This document shows, in pieces, positions 1 through 20,757 of a stretch of DNA of 20,757 bases; within the stretch, counting starts at the first letter, position 1, and each line of letters opens with the position of its first letter. The position numbers and the translations under genes are program-made. This DNA comes from Azolla caroliniana (Eukaryota; Plantae; Polypodiophyta): NCBI GenBank assembly GCA_043228905.1, contig JBHGNT010000560.1, positions 1 to 20,757 on the forward strand, read 5' to 3'. The notes beneath the pieces are model-generated. The model searched no databases. It saw only the letters and a program-made list of their open reading frames with translations, and was not told where the DNA came from.

Positions 1-1256
1 ATGACGAGTTCAAGGCAGCCGAGCCGGTAATGAAAGACCAACAAAAATCAGACGATCTCATAGCCGAAGTAAAGACTGAACTCATCGACCACAACCTGCT
101 CATTGTGAGTTCCATAGGTCATGAAGAAATCTCACAGCAGGAACATACCATTAAAACTCAGCCGGAGATAAATGTTCCAGAAAACCAAGAAGGCACCTAT
201 GGTCATCAAGATGAGCTCTCTGTACCAGACCAGAGTGCTCAAGAGCAACAGAGCTCAGAACATCTACACAGAGAAGAACTGCCGAGAGATTTTGCCGCAA
301 TGGACTGCGATGACATTAAGAAAACGGAGCATCTTTCAGAAGAGCACCGCACATCAGGAGATGTCTACAAGGAAGACGACAAGGAACTTCCACATGCTGA
401 TATAGTGGAAGCCCCTTCAGATGGGGTTACTCTTCTAGGCATAAAAGACCAGTTTCCTGAAGAACAGGAGACTTCGGGAGATGCCCAATGTGAGAAAGAA
501 CACAAAGACTCTGCGGTTAGTGACAGGGATGAGTTAAAGGCAATAGTCCGTCCTCCTCAAAAGCAACAGACATCAAAAGATTCAACAGAGGAAGTACATG
601 ATGAATTCAACGAAGACAACGTACTACATCCCGATCTCAGAGCGAGCCAAGAAATCAAAGAGGACGTTCCAGCAAACCAAGCCACACTATATAGGGACGA
701 AGATGAGCTCAATGTACTAAACCAAATGGCGGAACAGCAGCACACCTCTCCACTCATAACAACACATCACGAGCAAAAAGACTTTGCCTCACGTGACCTC
801 GATGATGTCACGATAACAGTGCGTCCTTCCGAAGATTGCCACCCATCAGAAGATATCCAACACCCAGAACAAAATGAACTGCTTCCTGCACATATACTGG
901 ATGTCCCTGACGATGTACTTCCTCTTTCTAAAGAAGAACCATTGGCTGAACAACAAGAGGCCTCAACATATTTACAAAAAGAAGAACAGAAAGATTTTGA
1001 GGCCAGTGATCTGAACGAGACCAAGGGATATCCCCTTAAAGAGCGACAAACATCAGAATATAACATCGAGGAAGAAAATCCTGAATTCATAATAGAAACG
1101 CCACCCAAGTTTCATACAATGGGGCAACAGGAAATCACAGCGGAAGAATATATAGCTAAAAGTGTTCAGGAGATCAACCTTGCAGCGAACCAGGAATCCC
1201 TGGATCGTGATCAAGATGATTTCGATGGGCTAAGCCACACGGCTGAAGAGCAACAT
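1..1256 (+). repeat. Diverged in-frame flanking copy of the repeat unit
   Basis: Aligns to 1693..2939 with offset 1692, then 1680 (12-nt indel near 366-384), then 1683 (3-nt indel near 915-920). By hand it has about 57 amino-acid-changing and about 19 silent codon differences over about 413 codons. Confidence 0.95.
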
Positions 1257-4200
1257 TCGTCTGAAGATAAAACAACAGAAGAAGAGCACAAAGATGTTAC
1301 CCCAGGTGACTCCGATGCGTTCTTCACAGCCGCACATACTTCACAACATATACTGGATGCTCCCACAGATGTAGTAACTGCTGCAAGTATACAAACACCA
1401 TTTGCTCAAGACCAAGACAGGTCCGAAGATCTTCAAAAAGAGAAATACCAGGAAGCCATTCAGAGAAATGACCATGTGTCAGAAGATACAACAGGAGAAG
1501 AACATCACAAAGATGTTACCCCAGGTGACTGCGATGTGTTCATCACAGCCGCGCATCCTACAGAACATATACCAGAAGCTCCCGCAGATGGACTCACTGC
1601 TGCAAGTATACAAACACCATTTCCTCAAGACCAAGACACATCCGAAGATGTTCAAAAAGGGGAAGAGCAGGAAGACTTTCAGGGAAGTGAGCACGATGAG
1701 TTCAAAGCAGCCGAGCATGTAATTGAAGACCAACAAAAATCGGACGATCTCATAGACCAAATACAGCCTGAACTCATCGACCACAACCTGCTCATTGTGA
1801 GTTCCATAGGTCACCAAGAAATCTCACAGCAGGAACACACAATTAAAACTCAGCCGGAGATCAATGTTCCAGAAAACCAAGAAGGCACCTATGGTCATCA
1901 AGATGAGCTCTCTGTACCAGACCAGAGTGCTGAAGCGCAACAGAGCTCAGAATATCTACAAAGAGAAGAACAGCCGAGAGATTTTGTCGAAACGGACTGC
2001 GGAGACATTAAGAAAACGGAGCATCTTTCAGAGGAGCACCGCACATCAGGAGATGCCTACGAGGAACTTCCACATGCTGATACAGTGGATGCCCCTTCAG
2101 ATGGGGTTACTCTTCTGGGCATAAAAGACCAGTTTCCTGAAGAACAGGAGACCTCGGGAGATGCCCAATGTGAGGAAGAACAAAAAGACTCTGCGGCTAG
2201 TGACAGGGATGAGTTAGAGGCAATAGTCCGTCCTCCTCAAGAGCAACAGACATCGGACGATTCCACAGAGGAAGTACATGATGAACTCAAAGAAGACAAC
2301 CTACTACATGCCGATCTCATAGCCAGCCAAGAAATCAAAGAGGACGTTCCAGCAAACCAAGCCACGCTATATAGGGACGAAGATGAGCTCAATGTACTAA
2401 ACCGAATGGCGGAAGAGCAGCACACCTCTCCACTGATAACAACACATGAGGAGCAAAAAGACTTTGCCGCACGTGACTTCGATGAGCTCACGATAACAGC
2501 GCGTCCTTCCGAAGATCGCCACCCATCAGAAGATATCCAACACCCAGAACAAAATGAACTTCTTCCTGCACATATACTGGATGCCCCTGAGGATGTAGTT
2601 CTTCCTCTTCGTAAAGAAGAACCATTGGCTGAACAACAAGAGGCCTCAACATATTTACAAAAAGAAGAACAGAAAGATTTTGAGGCCAGTGATCTGAACG
2701 AGAACAAGGGATATCCCCTTAAAGAGCGACAAACATCAGAATATAGCATCGAGGAAGAAAATACAGAATTCATAATAGAAACGCCACCCAATGTCGATAC
2801 GATGGGGCGCCAGGAAATTACACCGGAAGAACATACAGCTAAAAGTGTTGAGGAGATCAACCTTGCAGCGAACCAGGAATCCCTGGATCGTGATCAAGTT
2901 GATTTCGATGGGCTAAGCCACACGGCTGAACAGCAACATGCGTCAGAAGATACAACAGGAGAAGAACATCACAAAGATGTTACCCCAGGTGACTGCGATG
3001 TGTTCATCACAGCCGCGCATCCTACAGAACATATACCAGAAGCTCCCGCAGATGGACTCACTGCTGCAAGTATACAAACACCATTTCCTCAAGACCAAGA
3101 CACATCCGAAGATGTTCAAAAAGGGGAAGAGCAGGAAGACTTTCAGGGAAGTGAGCACGATGAGTTCAAAGCAGCCGAGCATGTAATTGAAGACCAACAA
3201 AAATCGGACGATCTCATAGACCAAATACAGCCTGAACTCATCGACCACAACCTGCTCATTGTGAGTTCCATAGGTCACCAAGAAATCTCACAGCAGGAAC
3301 ACACAATTAAAACTCAGCCGGAGATCAATGTTCCAGAAAACCAAGAAGGCACCTATGGTCATCAAGATGAGCTCTCTGTACCAGACCAGAGTGCTGAAGC
3401 GCAACAGAGCTCAGAATATCTACAAAGAGAAGAACAGCCGAGAGATTTTGTCGAAACGGACTGCGGAGACATTAAGAAAACGGAGCATCTTTCAGAGGAG
3501 CACCGCACATCAGGAGATGCCTACGAGGAACTTCCACATGCTGATACAGTGGATGCCCCTTCAGATGGGGTTACTCTTCTGGGCATAAAAGACCAGTTTC
3601 CTGAAGAACAGGAGACCTCGGGAGATGCCCAATGTGAGGAAGAACAAAAAGACTCTGCGGCTAGTGACAGGGATGAGTTAGAGGCAATAGTCCGTCCTCC
3701 TCAAGAGCAACAGACATCGGACGATTCCACAGAGGAAGTACATGATGAACTCAAAGAAGACAACCTACTACATGCCGATCTCATAGCCAGCCAAGAAATC
3801 AAAGAGGACGTTCCAGCAAACCAAGCCACGCTATATAGGGACGAAGATGAGCTCAATGTACTAAACCGAATGGCGGAAGAGCAGCACACCTCTCCACTGA
3901 TAACAACACATGAGGAGCAAAAAGACTTTGCCGCACGTGACTTCGATGAGCTCACGATAACAGCGCGTCCTTCCGAAGATCGCCACCCATCAGAAGATAT
4001 CCAACACCCAGAACAAAATGAACTTCTTCCTGCACATATACTGGATGCCCCTGAGGATGTAGTTCTTCCTCTTCGTAAAGAAGAACCATTGGCTGAACAA
4101 CAAGAGGCCTCAACATATTTACAAAAAGAAGAACAGAAAGATTTTGAGGCCAGTGATCTGAACGAGAACAAGGGATATCCCCTTAAAGAGCGACAAACAT

Positions 4201-7200
4201 CAGAATATAGCATCGAGGAAGAAAATACAGAATTCATAATAGAAACGCCACCCAATGTCGATACGATGGGGCGCCAGGAAATTACACCGGAAGAACATAC
4301 AGCTAAAAGTGTTGAGGAGATCAACCTTGCAGCGAACCAGGAATCCCTGGATCGTGATCAAGTTGATTTCGATGGGCTAAGCCACACGGCTGAACAGCAA
4401 CATGCGTCAGAAGATACAACAGGAGAAGAACATCACAAAGATGTTACCCCAGGTGACTGCGATGTGTTCATCACAGCCGCGCATCCTACAGAACATATAC
4501 CAGAAGCTCCCGCAGATGGACTCACTGCTGCAAGTATACAAACACCATTTCCTCAAGACCAAGACACATCCGAAGATGTTCAAAAAGGGGAAGAGCAGGA
4601 AGACTTTCAGGGAAGTGAGCACGATGAGTTCAAAGCAGCCGAGCATGTAATTGAAGACCAACAAAAATCGGACGATCTCATAGACCAAATACAGCCTGAA
4701 CTCATCGACCACAACCTGCTCATTGTGAGTTCCATAGGTCACCAAGAAATCTCACAGCAGGAACACACAATTAAAACTCAGCCGGAGATCAATGTTCCAG
4801 AAAACCAAGAAGGCACCTATGGTCATCAAGATGAGCTCTCTGTACCAGACCAGAGTGCTGAAGCGCAACAGAGCTCAGAATATCTACAAAGAGAAGAACA
4901 GCCGAGAGATTTTGTCGAAACGGACTGCGGAGACATTAAGAAAACGGAGCATCTTTCAGAGGAGCACCGCACATCAGGAGATGCCTACGAGGAACTTCCA
5001 CATGCTGATACAGTGGATGCCCCTTCAGATGGGGTTACTCTTCTGGGCATAAAAGACCAGTTTCCTGAAGAACAGGAGACCTCGGGAGATGCCCAATGTG
5101 AGGAAGAACAAAAAGACTCTGCGGCTAGTGACAGGGATGAGTTAGAGGCAATAGTCCGTCCTCCTCAAGAGCAACAGACATCGGACGATTCCACAGAGGA
5201 AGTACATGATGAACTCAAAGAAGACAACCTACTACATGCCGATCTCATAGCCAGCCAAGAAATCAAAGAGGACGTTCCAGCAAACCAAGCCACGCTATAT
5301 AGGGACGAAGATGAGCTCAATGTACTAAACCGAATGGCGGAAGAGCAGCACACCTCTCCACTGATAACAACACATGAGGAGCAAAAAGACTTTGCCGCAC
5401 GTGACTTCGATGAGCTCACGATAACAGCGCGTCCTTCCGAAGATCGCCACCCATCAGAAGATATCCAACACCCAGAACAAAATGAACTTCTTCCTGCACA
5501 TATACTGGATGCCCCTGAGGATGTAGTTCTTCCTCTTCGTAAAGAAGAACCATTGGCTGAACAACAAGAGGCCTCAACATATTTACAAAAAGAAGAACAG
5601 AAAGATTTTGAGGCCAGTGATCTGAACGAGAACAAGGGATATCCCCTTAAAGAGCGACAAACATCAGAATATAGCATCGAGGAAGAAAATACAGAATTCA
5701 TAATAGAAACGCCACCCAATGTCGATACGATGGGGCGCCAGGAAATTACACCGGAAGAACATACAGCTAAAAGTGTTGAGGAGATCAACCTTGCAGCGAA
5801 CCAGGAATCCCTGGATCGTGATCAAGTTGATTTCGATGGGCTAAGCCACACGGCTGAACAGCAACATGCGTCAGAAGATACAACAGGAGAAGAACATCAC
5901 AAAGATGTTACCCCAGGTGACTGCGATGTGTTCATCACAGCCGCGCATCCTACAGAACATATACCAGAAGCTCCCGCAGATGGACTCACTGCTGCAAGTA
6001 TACAAACACCATTTCCTCAAGACCAAGACACATCCGAAGATGTTCAAAAAGGGGAAGAGCAGGAAGACTTTCAGGGAAGTGAGCACGATGAGTTCAAAGC
6101 AGCCGAGCATGTAATTGAAGACCAACAAAAATCGGACGATCTCATAGACCAAATACAGCCTGAACTCATCGACCACAACCTGCTCATTGTGAGTTCCATA
6201 GGTCACCAAGAAATCTCACAGCAGGAACACACAATTAAAACTCAGCCGGAGATCAATGTTCCAGAAAACCAAGAAGGCACCTATGGTCATCAAGATGAGC
6301 TCTCTGTACCAGACCAGAGTGCTGAAGCGCAACAGAGCTCAGAATATCTACAAAGAGAAGAACAGCCGAGAGATTTTGTCGAAACGGACTGCGGAGACAT
6401 TAAGAAAACGGAGCATCTTTCAGAGGAGCACCGCACATCAGGAGATGCCTACGAGGAACTTCCACATGCTGATACAGTGGATGCCCCTTCAGATGGGGTT
6501 ACTCTTCTGGGCATAAAAGACCAGTTTCCTGAAGAACAGGAGACCTCGGGAGATGCCCAATGTGAGGAAGAACAAAAAGACTCTGCGGCTAGTGACAGGG
6601 ATGAGTTAGAGGCAATAGTCCGTCCTCCTCAAGAGCAACAGACATCGGACGATTCCACAGAGGAAGTACATGATGAACTCAAAGAAGACAACCTACTACA
6701 TGCCGATCTCATAGCCAGCCAAGAAATCAAAGAGGACGTTCCAGCAAACCAAGCCACGCTATATAGGGACGAAGATGAGCTCAATGTACTAAACCGAATG
6801 GCGGAAGAGCAGCACACCTCTCCACTGATAACAACACATGAGGAGCAAAAAGACTTTGCCGCACGTGACTTCGATGAGCTCACGATAACAGCGCGTCCTT
6901 CCGAAGATCGCCACCCATCAGAAGATATCCAACACCCAGAACAAAATGAACTTCTTCCTGCACATATACTGGATGCCCCTGAGGATGTAGTTCTTCCTCT
7001 TCGTAAAGAAGAACCATTGGCTGAACAACAAGAGGCCTCAACATATTTACAAAAAGAAGAACAGAAAGATTTTGAGGCCAGTGATCTGAACGAGAACAAG
7101 GGATATCCCCTTAAAGAGCGACAAACATCAGAATATAGCATCGAGGAAGAAAATACAGAATTCATAATAGAAACGCCACCCAATGTCGATACGATGGGGC

Positions 7201-10200
7201 GCCAGGAAATTACACCGGAAGAACATACAGCTAAAAGTGTTGAGGAGATCAACCTTGCAGCGAACCAGGAATCCCTGGATCGTGATCAAGTTGATTTCGA
7301 TGGGCTAAGCCACACGGCTGAACAGCAACATGCGTCAGAAGATACAACAGGAGAAGAACATCACAAAGATGTTACCCCAGGTGACTGCGATGTGTTCATC
7401 ACAGCCGCGCATCCTACAGAACATATACCAGAAGCTCCCGCAGATGGACTCACTGCTGCAAGTATACAAACACCATTTCCTCAAGACCAAGACACATCCG
7501 AAGATGTTCAAAAAGGGGAAGAGCAGGAAGACTTTCAGGGAAGTGAGCACGATGAGTTCAAAGCAGCCGAGCATGTAATTGAAGACCAACAAAAATCGGA
7601 CGATCTCATAGACCAAATACAGCCTGAACTCATCGACCACAACCTGCTCATTGTGAGTTCCATAGGTCACCAAGAAATCTCACAGCAGGAACACACAATT
7701 AAAACTCAGCCGGAGATCAATGTTCCAGAAAACCAAGAAGGCACCTATGGTCATCAAGATGAGCTCTCTGTACCAGACCAGAGTGCTGAAGCGCAACAGA
7801 GCTCAGAATATCTACAAAGAGAAGAACAGCCGAGAGATTTTGTCGAAACGGACTGCGGAGACATTAAGAAAACGGAGCATCTTTCAGAGGAGCACCGCAC
7901 ATCAGGAGATGCCTACGAGGAACTTCCACATGCTGATACAGTGGATGCCCCTTCAGATGGGGTTACTCTTCTGGGCATAAAAGACCAGTTTCCTGAAGAA
8001 CAGGAGACCTCGGGAGATGCCCAATGTGAGGAAGAACAAAAAGACTCTGCGGCTAGTGACAGGGATGAGTTAGAGGCAATAGTCCGTCCTCCTCAAGAGC
8101 AACAGACATCGGACGATTCCACAGAGGAAGTACATGATGAACTCAAAGAAGACAACCTACTACATGCCGATCTCATAGCCAGCCAAGAAATCAAAGAGGA
8201 CGTTCCAGCAAACCAAGCCACGCTATATAGGGACGAAGATGAGCTCAATGTACTAAACCGAATGGCGGAAGAGCAGCACACCTCTCCACTGATAACAACA
8301 CATGAGGAGCAAAAAGACTTTGCCGCACGTGACTTCGATGAGCTCACGATAACAGCGCGTCCTTCCGAAGATCGCCACCCATCAGAAGATATCCAACACC
8401 CAGAACAAAATGAACTTCTTCCTGCACATATACTGGATGCCCCTGAGGATGTAGTTCTTCCTCTTCGTAAAGAAGAACCATTGGCTGAACAACAAGAGGC
8501 CTCAACATATTTACAAAAAGAAGAACAGAAAGATTTTGAGGCCAGTGATCTGAACGAGAACAAGGGATATCCCCTTAAAGAGCGACAAACATCAGAATAT
8601 AGCATCGAGGAAGAAAATACAGAATTCATAATAGAAACGCCACCCAATGTCGATACGATGGGGCGCCAGGAAATTACACCGGAAGAACATACAGCTAAAA
8701 GTGTTGAGGAGATCAACCTTGCAGCGAACCAGGAATCCCTGGATCGTGATCAAGTTGATTTCGATGGGCTAAGCCACACGGCTGAACAGCAACATGCGTC
8801 AGAAGATACAACAGGAGAAGAACATCACAAAGATGTTACCCCAGGTGACTGCGATGTGTTCATCACAGCCGCGCATCCTACAGAACATATACCAGAAGCT
8901 CCCGCAGATGGACTCACTGCTGCAAGTATACAAACACCATTTCCTCAAGACCAAGACACATCCGAAGATGTTCAAAAAGGGGAAGAGCAGGAAGACTTTC
9001 AGGGAAGTGAGCACGATGAGTTCAAAGCAGCCGAGCATGTAATTGAAGACCAACAAAAATCGGACGATCTCATAGACCAAATACAGCCTGAACTCATCGA
9101 CCACAACCTGCTCATTGTGAGTTCCATAGGTCACCAAGAAATCTCACAGCAGGAACACACAATTAAAACTCAGCCGGAGATCAATGTTCCAGAAAACCAA
9201 GAAGGCACCTATGGTCATCAAGATGAGCTCTCTGTACCAGACCAGAGTGCTGAAGCGCAACAGAGCTCAGAATATCTACAAAGAGAAGAACAGCCGAGAG
9301 ATTTTGTCGAAACGGACTGCGGAGACATTAAGAAAACGGAGCATCTTTCAGAGGAGCACCGCACATCAGGAGATGCCTACGAGGAACTTCCACATGCTGA
9401 TACAGTGGATGCCCCTTCAGATGGGGTTACTCTTCTGGGCATAAAAGACCAGTTTCCTGAAGAACAGGAGACCTCGGGAGATGCCCAATGTGAGGAAGAA
9501 CAAAAAGACTCTGCGGCTAGTGACAGGGATGAGTTAGAGGCAATAGTCCGTCCTCCTCAAGAGCAACAGACATCGGACGATTCCACAGAGGAAGTACATG
9601 ATGAACTCAAAGAAGACAACCTACTACATGCCGATCTCATAGCCAGCCAAGAAATCAAAGAGGACGTTCCAGCAAACCAAGCCACGCTATATAGGGACGA
9701 AGATGAGCTCAATGTACTAAACCGAATGGCGGAAGAGCAGCACACCTCTCCACTGATAACAACACATGAGGAGCAAAAAGACTTTGCCGCACGTGACTTC
9801 GATGAGCTCACGATAACAGCGCGTCCTTCCGAAGATCGCCACCCATCAGAAGATATCCAACACCCAGAACAAAATGAACTTCTTCCTGCACATATACTGG
9901 ATGCCCCTGAGGATGTAGTTCTTCCTCTTCGTAAAGAAGAACCATTGGCTGAACAACAAGAGGCCTCAACATATTTACAAAAAGAAGAACAGAAAGATTT
10001 TGAGGCCAGTGATCTGAACGAGAACAAGGGATATCCCCTTAAAGAGCGACAAACATCAGAATATAGCATCGAGGAAGAAAATACAGAATTCATAATAGAA
10101 ACGCCACCCAATGTCGATACGATGGGGCGCCAGGAAATTACACCGGAAGAACATACAGCTAAAAGTGTTGAGGAGATCAACCTTGCAGCGAACCAGGAAT

Positions 10201-13200
10201 CCCTGGATCGTGATCAAGTTGATTTCGATGGGCTAAGCCACACGGCTGAACAGCAACATGCGTCAGAAGATACAACAGGAGAAGAACATCACAAAGATGT
10301 TACCCCAGGTGACTGCGATGTGTTCATCACAGCCGCGCATCCTACAGAACATATACCAGAAGCTCCCGCAGATGGACTCACTGCTGCAAGTATACAAACA
10401 CCATTTCCTCAAGACCAAGACACATCCGAAGATGTTCAAAAAGGGGAAGAGCAGGAAGACTTTCAGGGAAGTGAGCACGATGAGTTCAAAGCAGCCGAGC
10501 ATGTAATTGAAGACCAACAAAAATCGGACGATCTCATAGACCAAATACAGCCTGAACTCATCGACCACAACCTGCTCATTGTGAGTTCCATAGGTCACCA
10601 AGAAATCTCACAGCAGGAACACACAATTAAAACTCAGCCGGAGATCAATGTTCCAGAAAACCAAGAAGGCACCTATGGTCATCAAGATGAGCTCTCTGTA
10701 CCAGACCAGAGTGCTGAAGCGCAACAGAGCTCAGAATATCTACAAAGAGAAGAACAGCCGAGAGATTTTGTCGAAACGGACTGCGGAGACATTAAGAAAA
10801 CGGAGCATCTTTCAGAGGAGCACCGCACATCAGGAGATGCCTACGAGGAACTTCCACATGCTGATACAGTGGATGCCCCTTCAGATGGGGTTACTCTTCT
10901 GGGCATAAAAGACCAGTTTCCTGAAGAACAGGAGACCTCGGGAGATGCCCAATGTGAGGAAGAACAAAAAGACTCTGCGGCTAGTGACAGGGATGAGTTA
11001 GAGGCAATAGTCCGTCCTCCTCAAGAGCAACAGACATCGGACGATTCCACAGAGGAAGTACATGATGAACTCAAAGAAGACAACCTACTACATGCCGATC
11101 TCATAGCCAGCCAAGAAATCAAAGAGGACGTTCCAGCAAACCAAGCCACGCTATATAGGGACGAAGATGAGCTCAATGTACTAAACCGAATGGCGGAAGA
11201 GCAGCACACCTCTCCACTGATAACAACACATGAGGAGCAAAAAGACTTTGCCGCACGTGACTTCGATGAGCTCACGATAACAGCGCGTCCTTCCGAAGAT
11301 CGCCACCCATCAGAAGATATCCAACACCCAGAACAAAATGAACTTCTTCCTGCACATATACTGGATGCCCCTGAGGATGTAGTTCTTCCTCTTCGTAAAG
11401 AAGAACCATTGGCTGAACAACAAGAGGCCTCAACATATTTACAAAAAGAAGAACAGAAAGATTTTGAGGCCAGTGATCTGAACGAGAACAAGGGATATCC
11501 CCTTAAAGAGCGACAAACATCAGAATATAGCATCGAGGAAGAAAATACAGAATTCATAATAGAAACGCCACCCAATGTCGATACGATGGGGCGCCAGGAA
11601 ATTACACCGGAAGAACATACAGCTAAAAGTGTTGAGGAGATCAACCTTGCAGCGAACCAGGAATCCCTGGATCGTGATCAAGTTGATTTCGATGGGCTAA
11701 GCCACACGGCTGAACAGCAACATGCGTCAGAAGATACAACAGGAGAAGAACATCACAAAGATGTTACCCCAGGTGACTGCGATGTGTTCATCACAGCCGC
11801 GCATCCTACAGAACATATACCAGAAGCTCCCGCAGATGGACTCACTGCTGCAAGTATACAAACACCATTTCCTCAAGACCAAGACACATCCGAAGATGTT
11901 CAAAAAGGGGAAGAGCAGGAAGACTTTCAGGGAAGTGAGCACGATGAGTTCAAAGCAGCCGAGCATGTAATTGAAGACCAACAAAAATCGGACGATCTCA
12001 TAGACCAAATACAGCCTGAACTCATCGACCACAACCTGCTCATTGTGAGTTCCATAGGTCACCAAGAAATCTCACAGCAGGAACACACAATTAAAACTCA
12101 GCCGGAGATCAATGTTCCAGAAAACCAAGAAGGCACCTATGGTCATCAAGATGAGCTCTCTGTACCAGACCAGAGTGCTGAAGCGCAACAGAGCTCAGAA
12201 TATCTACAAAGAGAAGAACAGCCGAGAGATTTTGTCGAAACGGACTGCGGAGACATTAAGAAAACGGAGCATCTTTCAGAGGAGCACCGCACATCAGGAG
12301 ATGCCTACGAGGAACTTCCACATGCTGATACAGTGGATGCCCCTTCAGATGGGGTTACTCTTCTGGGCATAAAAGACCAGTTTCCTGAAGAACAGGAGAC
12401 CTCGGGAGATGCCCAATGTGAGGAAGAACAAAAAGACTCTGCGGCTAGTGACAGGGATGAGTTAGAGGCAATAGTCCGTCCTCCTCAAGAGCAACAGACA
12501 TCGGACGATTCCACAGAGGAAGTACATGATGAACTCAAAGAAGACAACCTACTACATGCCGATCTCATAGCCAGCCAAGAAATCAAAGAGGACGTTCCAG
12601 CAAACCAAGCCACGCTATATAGGGACGAAGATGAGCTCAATGTACTAAACCGAATGGCGGAAGAGCAGCACACCTCTCCACTGATAACAACACATGAGGA
12701 GCAAAAAGACTTTGCCGCACGTGACTTCGATGAGCTCACGATAACAGCGCGTCCTTCCGAAGATCGCCACCCATCAGAAGATATCCAACACCCAGAACAA
12801 AATGAACTTCTTCCTGCACATATACTGGATGCCCCTGAGGATGTAGTTCTTCCTCTTCGTAAAGAAGAACCATTGGCTGAACAACAAGAGGCCTCAACAT
12901 ATTTACAAAAAGAAGAACAGAAAGATTTTGAGGCCAGTGATCTGAACGAGAACAAGGGATATCCCCTTAAAGAGCGACAAACATCAGAATATAGCATCGA
13001 GGAAGAAAATACAGAATTCATAATAGAAACGCCACCCAATGTCGATACGATGGGGCGCCAGGAAATTACACCGGAAGAACATACAGCTAAAAGTGTTGAG
13101 GAGATCAACCTTGCAGCGAACCAGGAATCCCTGGATCGTGATCAAGTTGATTTCGATGGGCTAAGCCACACGGCTGAACAGCAACATGCGTCAGAAGATA

Positions 13201-16200
13201 CAACAGGAGAAGAACATCACAAAGATGTTACCCCAGGTGACTGCGATGTGTTCATCACAGCCGCGCATCCTACAGAACATATACCAGAAGCTCCCGCAGA
13301 TGGACTCACTGCTGCAAGTATACAAACACCATTTCCTCAAGACCAAGACACATCCGAAGATGTTCAAAAAGGGGAAGAGCAGGAAGACTTTCAGGGAAGT
13401 GAGCACGATGAGTTCAAAGCAGCCGAGCATGTAATTGAAGACCAACAAAAATCGGACGATCTCATAGACCAAATACAGCCTGAACTCATCGACCACAACC
13501 TGCTCATTGTGAGTTCCATAGGTCACCAAGAAATCTCACAGCAGGAACACACAATTAAAACTCAGCCGGAGATCAATGTTCCAGAAAACCAAGAAGGCAC
13601 CTATGGTCATCAAGATGAGCTCTCTGTACCAGACCAGAGTGCTGAAGCGCAACAGAGCTCAGAATATCTACAAAGAGAAGAACAGCCGAGAGATTTTGTC
13701 GAAACGGACTGCGGAGACATTAAGAAAACGGAGCATCTTTCAGAGGAGCACCGCACATCAGGAGATGCCTACGAGGAACTTCCACATGCTGATACAGTGG
13801 ATGCCCCTTCAGATGGGGTTACTCTTCTGGGCATAAAAGACCAGTTTCCTGAAGAACAGGAGACCTCGGGAGATGCCCAATGTGAGGAAGAACAAAAAGA
13901 CTCTGCGGCTAGTGACAGGGATGAGTTAGAGGCAATAGTCCGTCCTCCTCAAGAGCAACAGACATCGGACGATTCCACAGAGGAAGTACATGATGAACTC
14001 AAAGAAGACAACCTACTACATGCCGATCTCATAGCCAGCCAAGAAATCAAAGAGGACGTTCCAGCAAACCAAGCCACGCTATATAGGGACGAAGATGAGC
14101 TCAATGTACTAAACCGAATGGCGGAAGAGCAGCACACCTCTCCACTGATAACAACACATGAGGAGCAAAAAGACTTTGCCGCACGTGACTTCGATGAGCT
14201 CACGATAACAGCGCGTCCTTCCGAAGATCGCCACCCATCAGAAGATATCCAACACCCAGAACAAAATGAACTTCTTCCTGCACATATACTGGATGCCCCT
14301 GAGGATGTAGTTCTTCCTCTTCGTAAAGAAGAACCATTGGCTGAACAACAAGAGGCCTCAACATATTTACAAAAAGAAGAACAGAAAGATTTTGAGGCCA
14401 GTGATCTGAACGAGAACAAGGGATATCCCCTTAAAGAGCGACAAACATCAGAATATAGCATCGAGGAAGAAAATACAGAATTCATAATAGAAACGCCACC
14501 CAATGTCGATACGATGGGGCGCCAGGAAATTACACCGGAAGAACATACAGCTAAAAGTGTTGAGGAGATCAACCTTGCAGCGAACCAGGAATCCCTGGAT
14601 CGTGATCAAGTTGATTTCGATGGGCTAAGCCACACGGCTGAACAGCAACATGCGTCAGAAGATACAACAGGAGAAGAACATCACAAAGATGTTACCCCAG
14701 GTGACTGCGATGTGTTCATCACAGCCGCGCATCCTACAGAACATATACCAGAAGCTCCCGCAGATGGACTCACTGCTGCAAGTATACAAACACCATTTCC
14801 TCAAGACCAAGACACATCCGAAGATGTTCAAAAAGGGGAAGAGCAGGAAGACTTTCAGGGAAGTGAGCACGATGAGTTCAAAGCAGCCGAGCATGTAATT
14901 GAAGACCAACAAAAATCGGACGATCTCATAGACCAAATACAGCCTGAACTCATCGACCACAACCTGCTCATTGTGAGTTCCATAGGTCACCAAGAAATCT
15001 CACAGCAGGAACACACAATTAAAACTCAGCCGGAGATCAATGTTCCAGAAAACCAAGAAGGCACCTATGGTCATCAAGATGAGCTCTCTGTACCAGACCA
15101 GAGTGCTGAAGCGCAACAGAGCTCAGAATATCTACAAAGAGAAGAACAGCCGAGAGATTTTGTCGAAACGGACTGCGGAGACATTAAGAAAACGGAGCAT
15201 CTTTCAGAGGAGCACCGCACATCAGGAGATGCCTACGAGGAACTTCCACATGCTGATACAGTGGATGCCCCTTCAGATGGGGTTACTCTTCTGGGCATAA
15301 AAGACCAGTTTCCTGAAGAACAGGAGACCTCGGGAGATGCCCAATGTGAGGAAGAACAAAAAGACTCTGCGGCTAGTGACAGGGATGAGTTAGAGGCAAT
15401 AGTCCGTCCTCCTCAAGAGCAACAGACATCGGACGATTCCACAGAGGAAGTACATGATGAACTCAAAGAAGACAACCTACTACATGCCGATCTCATAGCC
15501 AGCCAAGAAATCAAAGAGGACGTTCCAGCAAACCAAGCCACGCTATATAGGGACGAAGATGAGCTCAATGTACTAAACCGAATGGCGGAAGAGCAGCACA
15601 CCTCTCCACTGATAACAACACATGAGGAGCAAAAAGACTTTGCCGCACGTGACTTCGATGAGCTCACGATAACAGCGCGTCCTTCCGAAGATCGCCACCC
15701 ATCAGAAGATATCCAACACCCAGAACAAAATGAACTTCTTCCTGCACATATACTGGATGCCCCTGAGGATGTAGTTCTTCCTCTTCGTAAAGAAGAACCA
15801 TTGGCTGAACAACAAGAGGCCTCAACATATTTACAAAAAGAAGAACAGAAAGATTTTGAGGCCAGTGATCTGAACGAGAACAAGGGATATCCCCTTAAAG
15901 AGCGACAAACATCAGAATATAGCATCGAGGAAGAAAATACAGAATTCATAATAGAAACGCCACCCAATGTCGATACGATGGGGCGCCAGGAAATTACACC
16001 GGAAGAACATACAGCTAAAAGTGTTGAGGAGATCAACCTTGCAGCGAACCAGGAATCCCTGGATCGTGATCAAGTTGATTTCGATGGGCTAAGCCACACG
16101 GCTGAACAGCAACATGCGTCAGAAGATACAACAGGAGAAGAACATCACAAAGATGTTACCCCAGGTGACTGCGATGTGTTCATCACAGCCGCGCATCCTA

Positions 16201-19200
16201 CAGAACATATACCAGAAGCTCCCGCAGATGGACTCACTGCTGCAAGTATACAAACACCATTTCCTCAAGACCAAGACACATCCGAAGATGTTCAAAAAGG
16301 GGAAGAGCAGGAAGACTTTCAGGGAAGTGAGCACGATGAGTTCAAAGCAGCCGAGCATGTAATTGAAGACCAACAAAAATCGGACGATCTCATAGACCAA
16401 ATACAGCCTGAACTCATCGACCACAACCTGCTCATTGTGAGTTCCATAGGTCACCAAGAAATCTCACAGCAGGAACACACAATTAAAACTCAGCCGGAGA
16501 TCAATGTTCCAGAAAACCAAGAAGGCACCTATGGTCATCAAGATGAGCTCTCTGTACCAGACCAGAGTGCTGAAGCGCAACAGAGCTCAGAATATCTACA
16601 AAGAGAAGAACAGCCGAGAGATTTTGTCGAAACGGACTGCGGAGACATTAAGAAAACGGAGCATCTTTCAGAGGAGCACCGCACATCAGGAGATGCCTAC
16701 GAGGAACTTCCACATGCTGATACAGTGGATGCCCCTTCAGATGGGGTTACTCTTCTGGGCATAAAAGACCAGTTTCCTGAAGAACAGGAGACCTCGGGAG
16801 ATGCCCAATGTGAGGAAGAACAAAAAGACTCTGCGGCTAGTGACAGGGATGAGTTAGAGGCAATAGTCCGTCCTCCTCAAGAGCAACAGACATCGGACGA
16901 TTCCACAGAGGAAGTACATGATGAACTCAAAGAAGACAACCTACTACATGCCGATCTCATAGCCAGCCAAGAAATCAAAGAGGACGTTCCAGCAAACCAA
17001 GCCACGCTATATAGGGACGAAGATGAGCTCAATGTACTAAACCGAATGGCGGAAGAGCAGCACACCTCTCCACTGATAACAACACATGAGGAGCAAAAAG
17101 ACTTTGCCGCACGTGACTTCGATGAGCTCACGATAACAGCGCGTCCTTCCGAAGATCGCCACCCATCAGAAGATATCCAACACCCAGAACAAAATGAACT
17201 TCTTCCTGCACATATACTGGATGCCCCTGAGGATGTAGTTCTTCCTCTTCGTAAAGAAGAACCATTGGCTGAACAACAAGAGGCCTCAACATATTTACAA
17301 AAAGAAGAACAGAAAGATTTTGAGGCCAGTGATCTGAACGAGAACAAGGGATATCCCCTTAAAGAGCGACAAACATCAGAATATAGCATCGAGGAAGAAA
17401 ATACAGAATTCATAATAGAAACGCCACCCAATGTCGATACGATGGGGCGCCAGGAAATTACACCGGAAGAACATACAGCTAAAAGTGTTGAGGAGATCAA
17501 CCTTGCAGCGAACCAGGAATCCCTGGATCGTGATCAAGTTGATTTCGATGGGCTAAGCCACACGGCTGAACAGCAACATGCGTCAGAAGATACAACAGGA
17601 GAAGAACATCACAAAGATGTTACCCCAGGTGACTGCGATGTGTTCATCACAGCCGCGCATCCTACAGAACATATACCAGAAGCTCCCGCAGATGGACTCA
17701 CTGCTGCAAGTATACAAACACCATTTCCTCAAGACCAAGACACATCCGAAGATGTTCAAAAAGGGGAAGAGCAGGAAGACTTTCAGGGAAGTGAGCACGA
17801 TGAGTTCAAAGCAGCCGAGCATGTAATTGAAGACCAACAAAAATCGGACGATCTCATAGACCAAATACAGCCTGAACTCATCGACCACAACCTGCTCATT
17901 GTGAGTTCCATAGGTCACCAAGAAATCTCACAGCAGGAACACACAATTAAAACTCAGCCGGAGATCAATGTTCCAGAAAACCAAGAAGGCACCTATGGTC
18001 ATCAAGATGAGCTCTCTGTACCAGACCAGAGTGCTGAAGCGCAACAGAGCTCAGAATATCTACAAAGAGAAGAACAGCCGAGAGATTTTGTCGAAACGGA
18101 CTGCGGAGACATTAAGAAAACGGAGCATCTTTCAGAGGAGCACCGCACATCAGGAGATGCCTACGAGGAACTTCCACATGCTGATACAGTGGATGCCCCT
18201 TCAGATGGGGTTACTCTTCTGGGCATAAAAGACCAGTTTCCTGAAGAACAGGAGACCTCGGGAGATGCCCAATGTGAGGAAGAACAAAAAGACTCTGCGG
18301 CTAGTGACAGGGATGAGTTAGAGGCAATAGTCCGTCCTCCTCAAGAGCAACAGACATCGGACGATTCCACAGAGGAAGTACATGATGAACTCAAAGAAGA
18401 CAACCTACTACATGCCGATCTCATAGCCAGCCAAGAAATCAAAGAGGACGTTCCAGCAAACCAAGCCACGCTATATAGGGACGAAGATGAGCTCAATGTA
18501 CTAAACCGAATGGCGGAAGAGCAGCACACCTCTCCACTGATAACAACACATGAGGAGCAAAAAGACTTTGCCGCACGTGACTTCGATGAGCTCACGATAA
18601 CAGCGCGTCCTTCCGAAGATCGCCACCCATCAGAAGATATCCAACACCCAGAACAAAATGAACTTCTTCCTGCACATATACTGGATGCCCCTGAGGATGT
18701 AGTTCTTCCTCTTCGTAAAGAAGAACCATTGGCTGAACAACAAGAGGCCTCAACATATTTACAAAAAGAAGAACAGAAAGATTTTGAGGCCAGTGATCTG
18801 AACGAGAACAAGGGATATCCCCTTAAAGAGCGACAAACATCAGAATATAGCATCGAGGAAGAAAATACAGAATTCATAATAGAAACGCCACCCAATGTCG
18901 ATACGATGGGGCGCCAGGAAATTACACCGGAAGAACATACAGCTAAAAGTGTTGAGGAGATCAACCTTGCAGCGAACCAGGAATCCCTGGATCGTGATCA
19001 AGTTGATTTCGATGGGCTAAGCCACACGGCTGAACAGCAACATGCGTCAGAAGATACAACAGGAGAAGAACATCACAAAGATGTTACCCCAGGTGACTGC
19101 GATGTGTTCATCACAGCCGCGCATCCTACAGAACATATACCAGAAGCTCCCGCAGATGGACTCACTGCTGCAAGTATACAAACACCATTTCCTCAAGACC

Positions 19201-20756
19201 AAGACACATCCGAAGATGTTCAAAAAGGGGAAGAGCAGGAAGACTTTCAGGGAAGTGAGCACGATGAGTTCAAAGCAGCCGAGCATGTAATTGAAGACCA
19301 ACAAAAATCGGACGATCTCATAGACCAAATACAGCCTGAACTCATCGACCACAACCTGCTCATTGTGAGTTCCATAGGTCACCAAGAAATCTCACAGCAG
19401 GAACACACAATTAAAACTCAGCCGGAGATCAATGTTCCAGAAAACCAAGAAGGCACCTATGGTCATCAAGATGAGCTCTCTGTACCAGACCAGAGTGCTG
19501 AAGCGCAACAGAGCTCAGAATATCTACAAAGAGAAGAACAGCCGAGAGATTTTGTCGAAACGGACTGCGGAGACATTAAGAAAACGGAGCATCTTTCAGA
19601 GGAGCACCGCACATCAGGAGATGCCTACGAGGAACTTCCACATGCTGATACAGTGGATGCCCCTTCAGATGGGGTTACTCTTCTGGGCATAAAAGACCAG
19701 TTTCCTGAAGAACAGGAGACCTCGGGAGATGCCCAATGTGAGGAAGAACAAAAAGACTCTGCGGCTAGTGACAGGGATGAGTTAGAGGCAATAGTCCGTC
19801 CTCCTCAAGAGCAACAGACATCGGACGATTCCACAGAGGAAGTACATGATGAACTCAAAGAAGACAACCTACTACATGCCGATCTCATAGCCAGCCAAGA
19901 AATCAAAGAGGACGTTCCAGCAAACCAAGCCACGCTATATAGGGACGAAGATGAGCTCAATGTACTAAACCGAATGGCGGAAGAGCAGCACACCTCTCCA
20001 CTGATAACAACACATGAGGAGCAAAAAGACTTTGCCGCACGTGACTTCGATGAGCTCACGATAACAGCGCGTCCTTCCGAAGATCGCCACCCATCAGAAG
20101 ATATCCAACACCCAGAACAAAATGAACTTCTTCCTGCACATATACTGGATGCCCCTGAGGATGTAGTTCTTCCTCTTCGTAAAGAAGAACCATTGGCTGA
20201 ACAACAAGAGGCCTCAACATATTTACAAAAAGAAGAACAGAAAGATTTTGAGGCCAGTGATCTGAACGAGAACAAGGGATATCCCCTTAAAGAGCGACAA
20301 ACATCAGAATATAGCATCGAGGAAGAAAATACAGAATTCATAATAGAAACGCCACCCAATGTCGATACGATGGGGCGCCAGGAAATTACACCGGAAGAAC
20401 ATACAGCTAAAAGTGTTGAGGAGATCAACCTTGCAGCGAACCAGGAATCCCTGGATCGTGATCAAGTTGATTTCGATGGGCTAAGCCACACGGCTGAACA
20501 GCAACATGCGTCAGAAGATACAACAGGAGAAGAACATCACAAAGATGTTACCCCAGGTGACTGCGATGTGTTCATCACAGCCGCGCATCCTACAGAACAT
20601 ATACCAGAAGCTCCCGCAGATGGACTCACTGCTGCAAGTATACAAACACCATTTCCTCAAGACCAAGACACATCCGAAGATGTTCAAAAAGGGGAAGAGC
20701 AGGAAGACTTTCAGGGAAGTGAGCACGATGAGTTCAAAGCAGCCGAGCATGTAATT
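3..20756 (+). CDS. Internal fragment (open at both ends) of a giant acidic tandem-repeat protein, at least 6,918 aa, E/D/Q/H-rich and probably largely disordered
   Basis: Manual translation of frame +3 gives DEFKAAEPVMKDQQKSDDLIAEVKTELIDHNLLIVSSIGHEEISQQEHTIKTQPEINVPENQEG... with no stop through the diverged 5' copy or a full 1,464-bp unit. Because 1,464 = 3 x 488, the frame stays open through the array to ...EHDEFKAAEHVI at the window end. All indels between copies are multiples of 3 (12, 3, 219 nt). The other five frames contain stops. The A/purine-rich + strand fits GAA/GAT/CAA codons. Confidence 0.93.
1254..1691 (+). repeat. Degenerate 219-bp (73-codon) direct tandem duplication, present only at the 5' edge of the array
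   Basis: Copy A 1254..1472 (HSSEDKTTEEEHKDVTPGDSDAFFTAAHTSQHILDAPTDVVTAASIQTPFAQDQDRSEDLQKEKYQEAIQRND) aligns without gaps to copy B 1473..1691 (HVSEDTTGEEHHKDVTPGDCDVFITAAHPTEHIPEAPADGLTAASIQTPFPQDQDTSEDVQKGEEQEDFQGSE). Confidence 0.93.
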
Positions 20757-20757
20757 G
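1478..20757 (+). repeat. Coding tandem array: 13 full copies plus a 248-bp partial copy of a 1,464-bp unit, apparently identical, running off the 3' end
   Basis: Every shadow ORF in the track recurs at exactly 1,464-bp spacing with identical translation (1864, 3328, 4792 ... 19432). Printed lines repeat every 7,320 bp (5 units; compare 1501, 8821 and 16141). Identity at offset 1,464 starts at 1478 (t1477 vs c2941 is the last mismatch I saw). Confidence 0.98.
1977..3440 (+). repeat. Ancient sub-repeats within one 488-aa unit: three modules of 160, 172 and 156 aa, each a short plus a long sub-repeat (same in every unit)
   Basis: An anchor motif EE[QH]..[KRE]D[FSV]...[DE].[DGN] falls at 1977, 2184, 2457, 2673, 2973, 3135 and again at 3441, giving spacings of 69/91/72/100/54/102 aa (sum 488). 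Short segments share [DE]AP.D[GV][VL]. Long segments share Q.S[DE]...QEI...NQ...AE.Q..S. Confidence 0.85.

Follow-up and report, generated by a model that had tools for sequence, protein, structure and literature searches.

The window, that is, the whole 20,757-nt stretch of DNA that was analysed, carries a single stop-free reading frame on the forward strand, which runs through one older, diverged repeat unit and then through a young array of base-identical units. Its features are as follows:

3-20756, + strand: stop-free frame +3 (6,918 codons, 781 kDa, net charge ~-1,376; E 16%, D 10.5%, Q 9%)
3-1478, + strand: older diverged full unit forming the left edge of the array (492 codons; 82% aa and 94% nt identity to the young unit)
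1260-1478, + strand: diverged duplicate of the unit's 73-codon tail (83.6% nt identity to 1479-1697)
1478-20757, + strand: young array of 13.17 base-identical 1,464-bp units, the last of which breaks off at its codon 11, where the window ends
1692-2207, + strand: module M1 of the reference unit (172 aa; unit self-alignment, shift ~156-171 aa, E 4e-65)
2208-2693, + strand: module M2 of the reference unit (162 aa; unit self-alignment)
2694-3155, + strand: module M3 of the reference unit (154 aa; unit self-alignment)

Frame +3 contains no stop in 6,918 codons, counted from its first codon at base 3, and is open at both ends of the window, as the initial annotation had claimed for the entire 20.7 kb; the fragment, which had been put at roughly 0.75 MDa, has a computed mass of 781 kDa. 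The other five frames contain 244, 494, 340, 243 and 175 stops and stay open for at most 218 aa, and the Ser/Cys-rich ORFs on the minus strand (up to 207-218 aa) were dismissed as the shadow that an E/D-rich frame usually casts on the opposite strand. From base composition, ~5% of random codons are expected to be stops, and a 488-codon unit would be open by chance with P ~1e-11. The annotation also remarked that the frame was absent from the accompanying ORF list, which is true of the list (only short ORFs are given in the window) but has no biological meaning, as the lister omits ORFs that run off the ends of the source. The codon-position signature is uniform (G at position 1, 41%; T at position 1, 9%; A at position 2, 48%) and codon-position bias is flat in all 60-codon windows, which rules out an in-frame intron hidden in the unit and upholds the earlier description of a single coding-type frame without apparent intron. 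Because 13 of the 14 units have the same sequence, the length of the frame adds nothing beyond one unit and the diverged unit, and the independent evidence amounts to only ~1,000 codons. A recently amplified array that is not translated would also be stop-free. The window contains no start, stop, signal peptide or flanking domain, and the figure of 6,918 aa thus refers to a fragment of an ORF and not to a proven protein.

The array is hierarchically organized. An exact periodicity of 1,464 bp (488 codons) extends over 1478-20757, with zero mismatches through 13.17 units and the last lag-1464 mismatch at 1477, in agreement with the 488-codon unit recognized earlier. The diverged copy that had been noticed at the left end proves to be a full unit that differs from the young one by in-frame indels, among other changes. 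A phase step of 219 bp lies where the old unit meets the young array: after the diverged tail copy, the young array restarts at the same phase (SEDTTGEE...) after 1478, and TRF detects a period of 219 at 1259-1690 (2.0 copies, 84% matches). Within the unit, M1, M2 and M3 are pairwise 34-39% identical at the amino-acid level and all three are still open, with dN ~0.45-0.5, dS ~0.6-0.7 and dN/dS 0.65-0.75. As in satellite DNA, the units stand head to tail and are homogenized. As 1,464 is divisible by three (3 x 488), gain or loss of units always keeps the frame.

Public sequencing runs, analysed as contigs with a 3,155-nt query, provide a view of the array outside this assembly. In the runs X1, X10 and X14, the unit assembles as one unbranched circular contig of 1,494/1,497 nt (k-1 overlap; joint 2941->1478), from which it follows that the units are near-uniform within each of these samples; in X11, five variant sites interrupt the contigs, which shows that this sample contains two variants of the unit. 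Relative to the window, organisms C and E have two synonymous and three non-synonymous changes and one codon insertion, each carried by the whole collapsed unit. This pattern of uniformity within a genome and difference between related genomes indicates a real array under concerted evolution. The older unit (1-1266) was found at ≥95% identity in none of the runs examined. X1 contains a 151-nt piece matching 1267-1417 with zero differences, together with a path of low depth that leaves the unit for unlike sequence (a 30-nt array-exit sequence). Depth in X1 is 210.8 for the unit vs 7.9 and 6.26 for the edge pieces, which suggests roughly 27-34 units per flank copy rather than 13, with the reservation that contig depth is not a copy number; the true array may be about twice its assembled length. 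Runs containing the unit include leaf metagenomes, on which the probable plant origin is partly based.

These observations bear on whether the array, while real, owes its length and perfect identity in part to assembly or polishing (collapse, expansion or consensus smoothing), in which case the true allele would differ from the 13 identical units and 6,918 aa given here. The window contains almost nothing besides repeat and ends mid-unit, and both the X1 depth ratio (210.8 to 6-8) and the two unit variants in X11 are consistent with such distortion. However, the single unbranched circular contig in X1, X10 and X14 argues for near-uniform units within those samples, and this explanation, which we consider somewhat unlikely, has no bearing on whether the frame is open or coding.

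Comparisons between diverged copies show that the frame has been preserved during evolution. The young and older units differ by 86 substitutions, distributed 31/21/34 over the codon positions (dN/dS 0.73-0.9), none of which creates a stop (simulated P 0.042). Between the unit and L001, the only relative found, 222 substitutions over 269 codons likewise leave no stop (simulated P 0.0012); L001 was found via a protein database, and the openness of its frame is thus partly ascertained. All indels are multiples of three, comprising 12, 3 and 219 nt in the older unit, three 3-nt gaps in L001 and a CAA insertion in organism C. ORF-preserving evolution is thus supported by in-frame indels and the lack of stops between diverged copies: the frame is kept through 6% to ~50% divergence, and the build-up of stops and frameshifts expected of a non-coding satellite is not seen. 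A coding origin of the unit is well supported by these comparisons. Constraint on the amino-acid sequence itself appears very weak, given that dN/dS is 0.65-0.9 over all comparisons and substitutions are spread nearly evenly over the codon positions. The array itself could be silent, since 13 identical units give selection no time to show.

This last point also favours a competing explanation, in which a 488-codon piece of an acidic-protein gene was recently amplified into a satellite that is open only for want of time to acquire stops, and that yields no protein, or from which only a few edge units are translated. The 13 base-identical units preserve no trace of selection, all comparisons give a dN/dS near 1, and L001 contains just 1.7 modules bounded by stops, such that the ancestral gene may have been small. 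In addition, no certain RNA run was found among the public runs containing the unit, all being DNA or of a type recorded as 'RNA? (a guess)'; the unit occurs in three runs of this guessed RNA type, whose contigs carry no strand or level information. Set against this, 86 substitutions and two small indels have left the frame of the older edge unit intact (P ~0.04 times ~1/9), the array is found, still open, in at least three labelled organisms, with a codon insertion that is in frame, and the coding-type composition is uniform. On balance, an untranslated satellite derived from a coding exon is unlikely.

The predicted product is E/D/Q-rich, with a pI of 4.2, a charge of ~-0.2 per residue, 4.8% His, no Trp and almost no Cys or Met. 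The two tryptic peptides previously named, EEPLAEQQEASTYLQK and EDVPANQATLYR, occur once each per unit, giving 14 occurrences each, always after K. Consistent with the earlier statement that no folded domain is recognizable, none is predicted: two structure models have a pLDDT of 43.8 and 52.2, the latter being the AlphaFold2 model of M2 with an 8-row alignment (pTM 0.13). On the basis of this low pLDDT and the charge-hydropathy plot, the protein is predicted to be intrinsically disordered.

Homologue searches place the product apart from described families. In Pfam, the unit and older unit match nothing above the curated cut-off (the sole match being DUF7348; E 0.15, 12.7 bits vs a cut-off of 27), and no Pfam signature of LEA, dehydrin or like plant disordered families was detected. 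Searches of PDB sequences and, for 1-3200, of Rfam gave 0 matches, and a search of the ESM Atlas by features gave no usable match. An exhaustive HMMER search of 1.84 billion representative proteins recovered only P0001, an unnamed 283-aa metagenome fragment, and a separate search for homologous proteins with the unit gave the same single match. No relative was found among giant proteins (searched with region 1-1051 of the whole 6,918-aa frame), no related locus was confirmed with an alignment as the query in JGI metagenomes, GTDB genomes or IMG/VR, and an exact 26-mer conserved between the unit and L001 had 0 matches in JGI metagenomes. The literature yielded no paper matching ERZ1034391 or the unit peptide strings, and broader searches no plant counterpart. 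That the protein resembles neither AHNAK, mucins, ankyrins, titin nor Futsch, as noted from the start, was thus confirmed with Pfam, PDB and HMMER, which also detected no sequence or domain similarity to filaggrin, hornerin or any Pfam or PDB entry. By these searches, the protein is an orphan. The initial proposal of an uncharacterized giant repeat protein holds as to a coding-type frame and orphan status, but not as to protein size, the figure being that of an ORF fragment.

The same searches bear on two further origins. An array lying inside or derived from a transposable element with an acidic repeat ORF, whose product would be an element protein or relic rather than that of a host gene, is very unlikely: neither unit nor older unit matches gag, pol or any other Pfam family, the window has no LTR, PBS or tRNA-like feature, and the unit depth of only ~30x the flanks fits one array rather than a dispersed family. 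A small circular replicon of 1,464 nt (eccDNA, or a circle of nanovirus or alphasatellite type) that had been read through many times over would explain the closure of short-read contigs into a 1,494-nt circle in three runs, but a collapsed tandem array yields the same contig, and this extremely improbable origin was rejected on the linkage of the array to a 94%-identical older unit in the assembly, the junction-side piece and low-depth exit in X1, and the absence of a Rep or other Pfam match and of any IMG/VR relative.

The best explanation, with a probability of about 0.6, is that the window is the internal part of a real chromosomal in-frame array within one giant uninterrupted coding exon of an orphan gene, most likely of a plant, encoding a polyanionic disordered repeat protein. 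Such an array could have arisen in three steps. A module of ~160 aa would have been triplicated long ago to form the 488-aa unit; this unit would then have been duplicated, leaving behind the older edge unit; and amplification would finally have produced at least 13, perhaps ~30, identical units, kept uniform through unequal crossing-over or gene conversion. Transcription and translation into a single chain would yield a polyanion of at least 0.78 MDa. Its function would probably depend on bulk properties (charge, length and short conserved motifs) rather than on a fold, and it may act as an extended hydrated polyelectrolyte that binds cations (Ca2+ or metals, via Asp/Glu and His). Alternatively, it may serve as a space-filling scaffold, or, more conjecturally, the chain may be cut into 488-aa units, as in profilaggrin. 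That the array does give rise, through transcription and translation, to one such chain, which would be polyanionic, disordered, specific to its lineage and at least 0.78 MDa in mass, or ~1.6 MDa if the ~30 units are real, is put forward only tentatively; to our knowledge, it would exceed in size every land-plant protein described so far.

If expressed, the array would encode an orphan acidic protein of the megadalton class concealed in sequence that repeat maskers handle as satellite DNA, and would be a clear case of the giant coding arrays in long-read plant assemblies that annotation pipelines discard. It would also offer a natural system for studying polyelectrolyte length variation between accessions and its effects on cation binding, hydration and the producing tissue. 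If the one-chain reading is true, base-identical 488-aa units leave the size of the protein free to change by unequal crossing-over between accessions. If not expressed, the array would still show in clean form how a coding exon gives rise to a satellite, at a stage before any decay.

Several known systems share parts of this organization. Kilobase-scale coding tandem units of variable copy number are found in macrosatellites such as D4Z4/DUX4, CT47 and DUB3/USP17 (PMC2588610). Unlike in D4Z4-type macrosatellites, where each unit is its own gene with a start and stop, the frame here runs through all unit joins, with no stop anywhere and only two internal Met per unit. In polyubiquitin, the unit is a folded domain of 76 aa that experiences extreme purifying selection, and cleavage takes place at a defined Gly-Gly. 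The array resembles polyubiquitin, which is translated as one chain, in that head-to-tail in-frame units without intervening stops are kept uniform by concerted evolution, but differs in having a dN/dS of 0.65-0.9, no predicted fold and no identified cleavage motif. Pf332 of Plasmodium falciparum is a protein of ~0.7 MDa with acidic degenerate repeats, encoded almost without introns. The predicted product would match it in size, acidic repeats and nearly intron-free coding; however, Pf332 has short degenerate repeats and belongs to another host lineage, whereas the present units are identical and 488 aa long, and no similarity was found by exhaustive HMMER.

The closest parallels are architectural rather than homologous and lie among giant-exon repeat proteins, in which, as here, an ORF stays open through all joins of a unit whose length is a multiple of three. 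The Balbiani-ring secretory proteins of Chironomus, spidroins, AHNAK and mucins are giant hierarchical repeat proteins under concerted evolution. The array shares with this group very long uninterrupted exons, repeats within repeats, weak per-residue constraint and units that are homogenized within species and differ between them, although the units of these proteins are usually shorter (10-250 aa), Cys/Pro/Ser/Thr/Gly/Ala-rich and secreted, and no homology to those described here was detected. Profilaggrin is cut into monomers. The predicted product is strongly acidic and its source is probably a plant, whereas profilaggrin and hornerin are mammalian epidermal proteins of the S100 fused type that have an S100 EF-hand head, a basic or Gly/Ser/His-rich composition and no sequence similarity to it. 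Even so, those proteins are likewise low-complexity and largely disordered, with bulk composition being what matters. The largest exon of hornerin consists of distinct repeating units of ~1.4 kb (PMC2588610). In architecture only, then, the array is like profilaggrin and hornerin: one giant exon of in-frame, near-identical units of ~1-1.4 kb in variable copy number.

Frame +3, read from base 3, contains no stop in 6,918 codons, a count behind which stand only ~1,000 codons of independent sequence (the diverged older unit at the left edge plus one unit of the base-identical young array); this bears out the initial annotation, which had claimed a stop-free ORF of more than 20.7 kb. The reading required neither a spliced model nor stop read-through, is open at both ends of the window and predicts a fragment of 781 kDa. 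The five other frames each carry 175–494 stops, and their longest open run is 218 aa. Stops are expected at ~5% of random codons at the base composition of the window, and arithmetic from this composition puts the chance of one 488-codon unit staying open at ~1e-11. The ORF had also been described as absent from the ORF track, correctly so: the listing shows short ORFs only, because its rule excludes those running off the ends. A minus-strand Ser/Cys-rich ORF of 207 aa (2237–2860, −) recurs once per unit at the same phase; it was rejected as a gene and is read as an antisense shadow of the Glu/Asp-rich frame.

Autocorrelation of the window DNA has its maxima at 1,464 nt and at multiples of that length, and from 1478 to the window end the periodicity is exact (13.17 units, no mismatches). 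The older unit, occupying the left 1,477 bases, shares 94% nucleotide and 82% amino acid identity with the young unit, with in-frame indels. It ends in a diverged copy of the unit tail, at whose phase the young array restarts (SEDTTGEE...); TRF reports tail copy and restart together as a 219-bp repeat in 2.0 copies (1259–1690). The 488-aa unit is itself made up of three modules, as seen in its self-alignment at a shift of ~156–171 aa (E 4e-65), and no comparable self-alignment was obtained from 20 shuffled unit sequences. The modules show 34–39% pairwise identity and have in common, roughly, the short motifs DE[LF]..., E.QQ.[ST]S[DE], QEI, N[VL]..NQ, EEQKDF and DAP.DG. The features are as follows:

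3–1478, + strand: older unit, 492 codons
1260–1478, + strand: diverged copy of the unit tail, the older unit's last 73 codons, 84% nucleotide identity
1692–2207, + strand: module M1, 172 aa
2208–2693, + strand: module M2, 162 aa
2694–3155, + strand: module M3, 154 aa

Codon-position bias is strong, with 41% G and 9% T at position 1 and 48% A and 9% G at position 2. This composition is even over all 60-codon windows, which rules out a hidden in-frame intron within the unit. Older and young units are separated by 86 substitutions, distributed 31/21/34 over the codon positions (dN/dS 0.73–0.9), and by indels of 12, 3 and 219 nt, with no stops; when the observed substitution spectrum was simulated, 4.2% of replicates were stop-free. 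Among the modules, dN is ~0.45–0.5 and dS ~0.6–0.7, with 488/488 codons open. The sole relative found, a 283-aa ORF (P0001) on a 1,640-bp ENA metagenome contig (L001), shares 77% nucleotide and 55% amino acid identity with the unit across 1.7 modules, with three alignment gaps, every one of 3 nt, and a dN/dS of 0.75–0.84. Under the 222 substitutions over 269 codons that separate the two, 0.12% of simulations stay open, the L001 frame being partly ascertained because it was found via a protein database. Together, the older unit, L001, the modules and the composition show a frame kept over the long term while residues drifted almost freely. In disordered repeat proteins, frame retention with near-free residue drift is the usual pattern.

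Within L001 (1–1640), the 1.7 modules lie between a stop near 529 and a stop at 1387–1389, and the contig could represent a short gene or a pseudogene, or else a cassette of exon plus intron. From the acidic tail of L001, a 48-nt stretch (1333–1379) is repeated 250 nt on (1583–1630) in a different frame, and a ~100-nt direct repeat occupies 4–96 and 133–236.

The predicted frame +3 protein is rich in E (16%), D (10.5%), Q (9%) and H (4.8%), with a pI of 4.16, a GRAVY of −1.12 and a net charge of ~−0.2 per residue; each unit contains three Cys, two Met and no Trp. No window along the protein reaches transmembrane-level hydrophobicity. On a charge-hydropathy plot, the unit falls well within the disordered side (mean hydropathy 0.375 vs a boundary of 0.485). 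AlphaFold2 returned a pLDDT of 43.8 and pTM of 0.17 for the whole unit without alignment. Given an alignment of eight rows, module M2 reached 52.2 and 0.13, and its model shows only a few low-confidence helices. The unit had no match in Pfam, PDB sequences, Rfam or the ESM Atlas; a length-matched search yielded no giant relatives, JGI metagenomes, GTDB genomes and IMG/VR yielded no relatives, and unit peptides had no occurrence in the literature searched. As far as these collections go, the repeat family is an orphan.

Twenty public sequencing runs from 14 studies, labelled as organisms A–E (coded here) or leaf metagenomes, contain about half the words of window 1–3155, i.e. the unit; with several leaf metagenomes among them, the source is probably a plant. 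None is recorded as RNA; X10, X11 and X14 are guessed to be RNA, available as contigs only and blind to strand, ends and level. In X1, X10 and X14, the unit is collapsed to one circular contig each (joint 2941->1478) of 1,494 or 1,497 nt, equal to 1,464 or 1,467 plus k-1. The depth of this contig in X1 is 210.8, compared with 7.9 for an older-tail piece (1267–1417) and 6.26 for a contig leaving the unit, a ratio that suggests ~27–34 units per flank copy, contig depth being no copy number. The unit-leaving contig (392 nt) tracks the unit to the equivalent of 1757 and then passes into unlike sequence, of which 30 nt are visible and keep frame +3 open over 10 codons; it may be the array's 3' exit or come from an isolated piece of a unit at some other genomic site.

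The organism C unit carries a synonymous C>T at 1838 and a CAA (Gln) codon insertion after 1937, and that of organism E has five substitutions (two synonymous, three non-synonymous); frame-breaking changes number zero in both. Such organism-specific changes, common to all units, are a signature of concerted evolution, which argues against an assembly or rolling-circle artefact. X11 contigs break within ~30 nt of 1838, 2279, 2579, 2752 and 2899 and carry alternative letters; these are organism E's five sites, pointing to two unit variants in that sample, where window-type and organism-E-type units seem to occur together, as in a heterozygote, hybrid or mixed array. At ≥95% identity, no run aligned covers window 1–1166, nor the older unit over 1–1266, so the older unit is corroborated by its tail alone; accessions may vary in how the array is bordered, or the runs may not include the sample of origin. 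That the assembled array length or unit identity is partly artefactual is less likely than not, and compatible with the giant-exon reading.

Judged by its sequence, the window ORF is genuine and robustly open, a giant repeat ORF of coding type that belongs to an orphan family. The window is best explained, with a probability of roughly 0.6, as an internal piece of a giant uninterrupted coding exon of an orphan gene for a polyanionic disordered protein, and as to kind it is a candidate giant single-exon tandem-repeat protein or coding macrosatellite. A silent satellite lately born from a coding exon would account for the lack of differences among the units, for a dN/dS close to neutral and for the short, stop-bounded L001, but sits poorly with the older unit's preserved frame and the in-frame changes between organisms, and is considered unlikely. 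Carriage of the array ORF as transposable-element cargo is improbable, and a 1.46-kb circular replicon very improbable indeed.

Under the giant-exon reading, a module would have multiplied in frame to give the three-module unit, which was then duplicated, the duplicated unit in turn becoming a homogenised array. The product would be polyanionic and intrinsically disordered, with a role set by bulk charge and length; it may bind and buffer cations or serve as a hydrated spacer or scaffold, or may instead be a precursor cleaved to 488-aa units.

Architectural likenesses extend to Balbiani-ring proteins, spidroins, AHNAK, mucins, Pf332 and polyubiquitin. The nearest known systems by architecture are profilaggrin and hornerin, to which there is no sequence likeness; the largest exon of hornerin consists of ~1.4-kb repeating units (PMC2588610). 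Sharing no sequence with any of these proteins, the giant repeat ORF would work as they do while standing outside their families.
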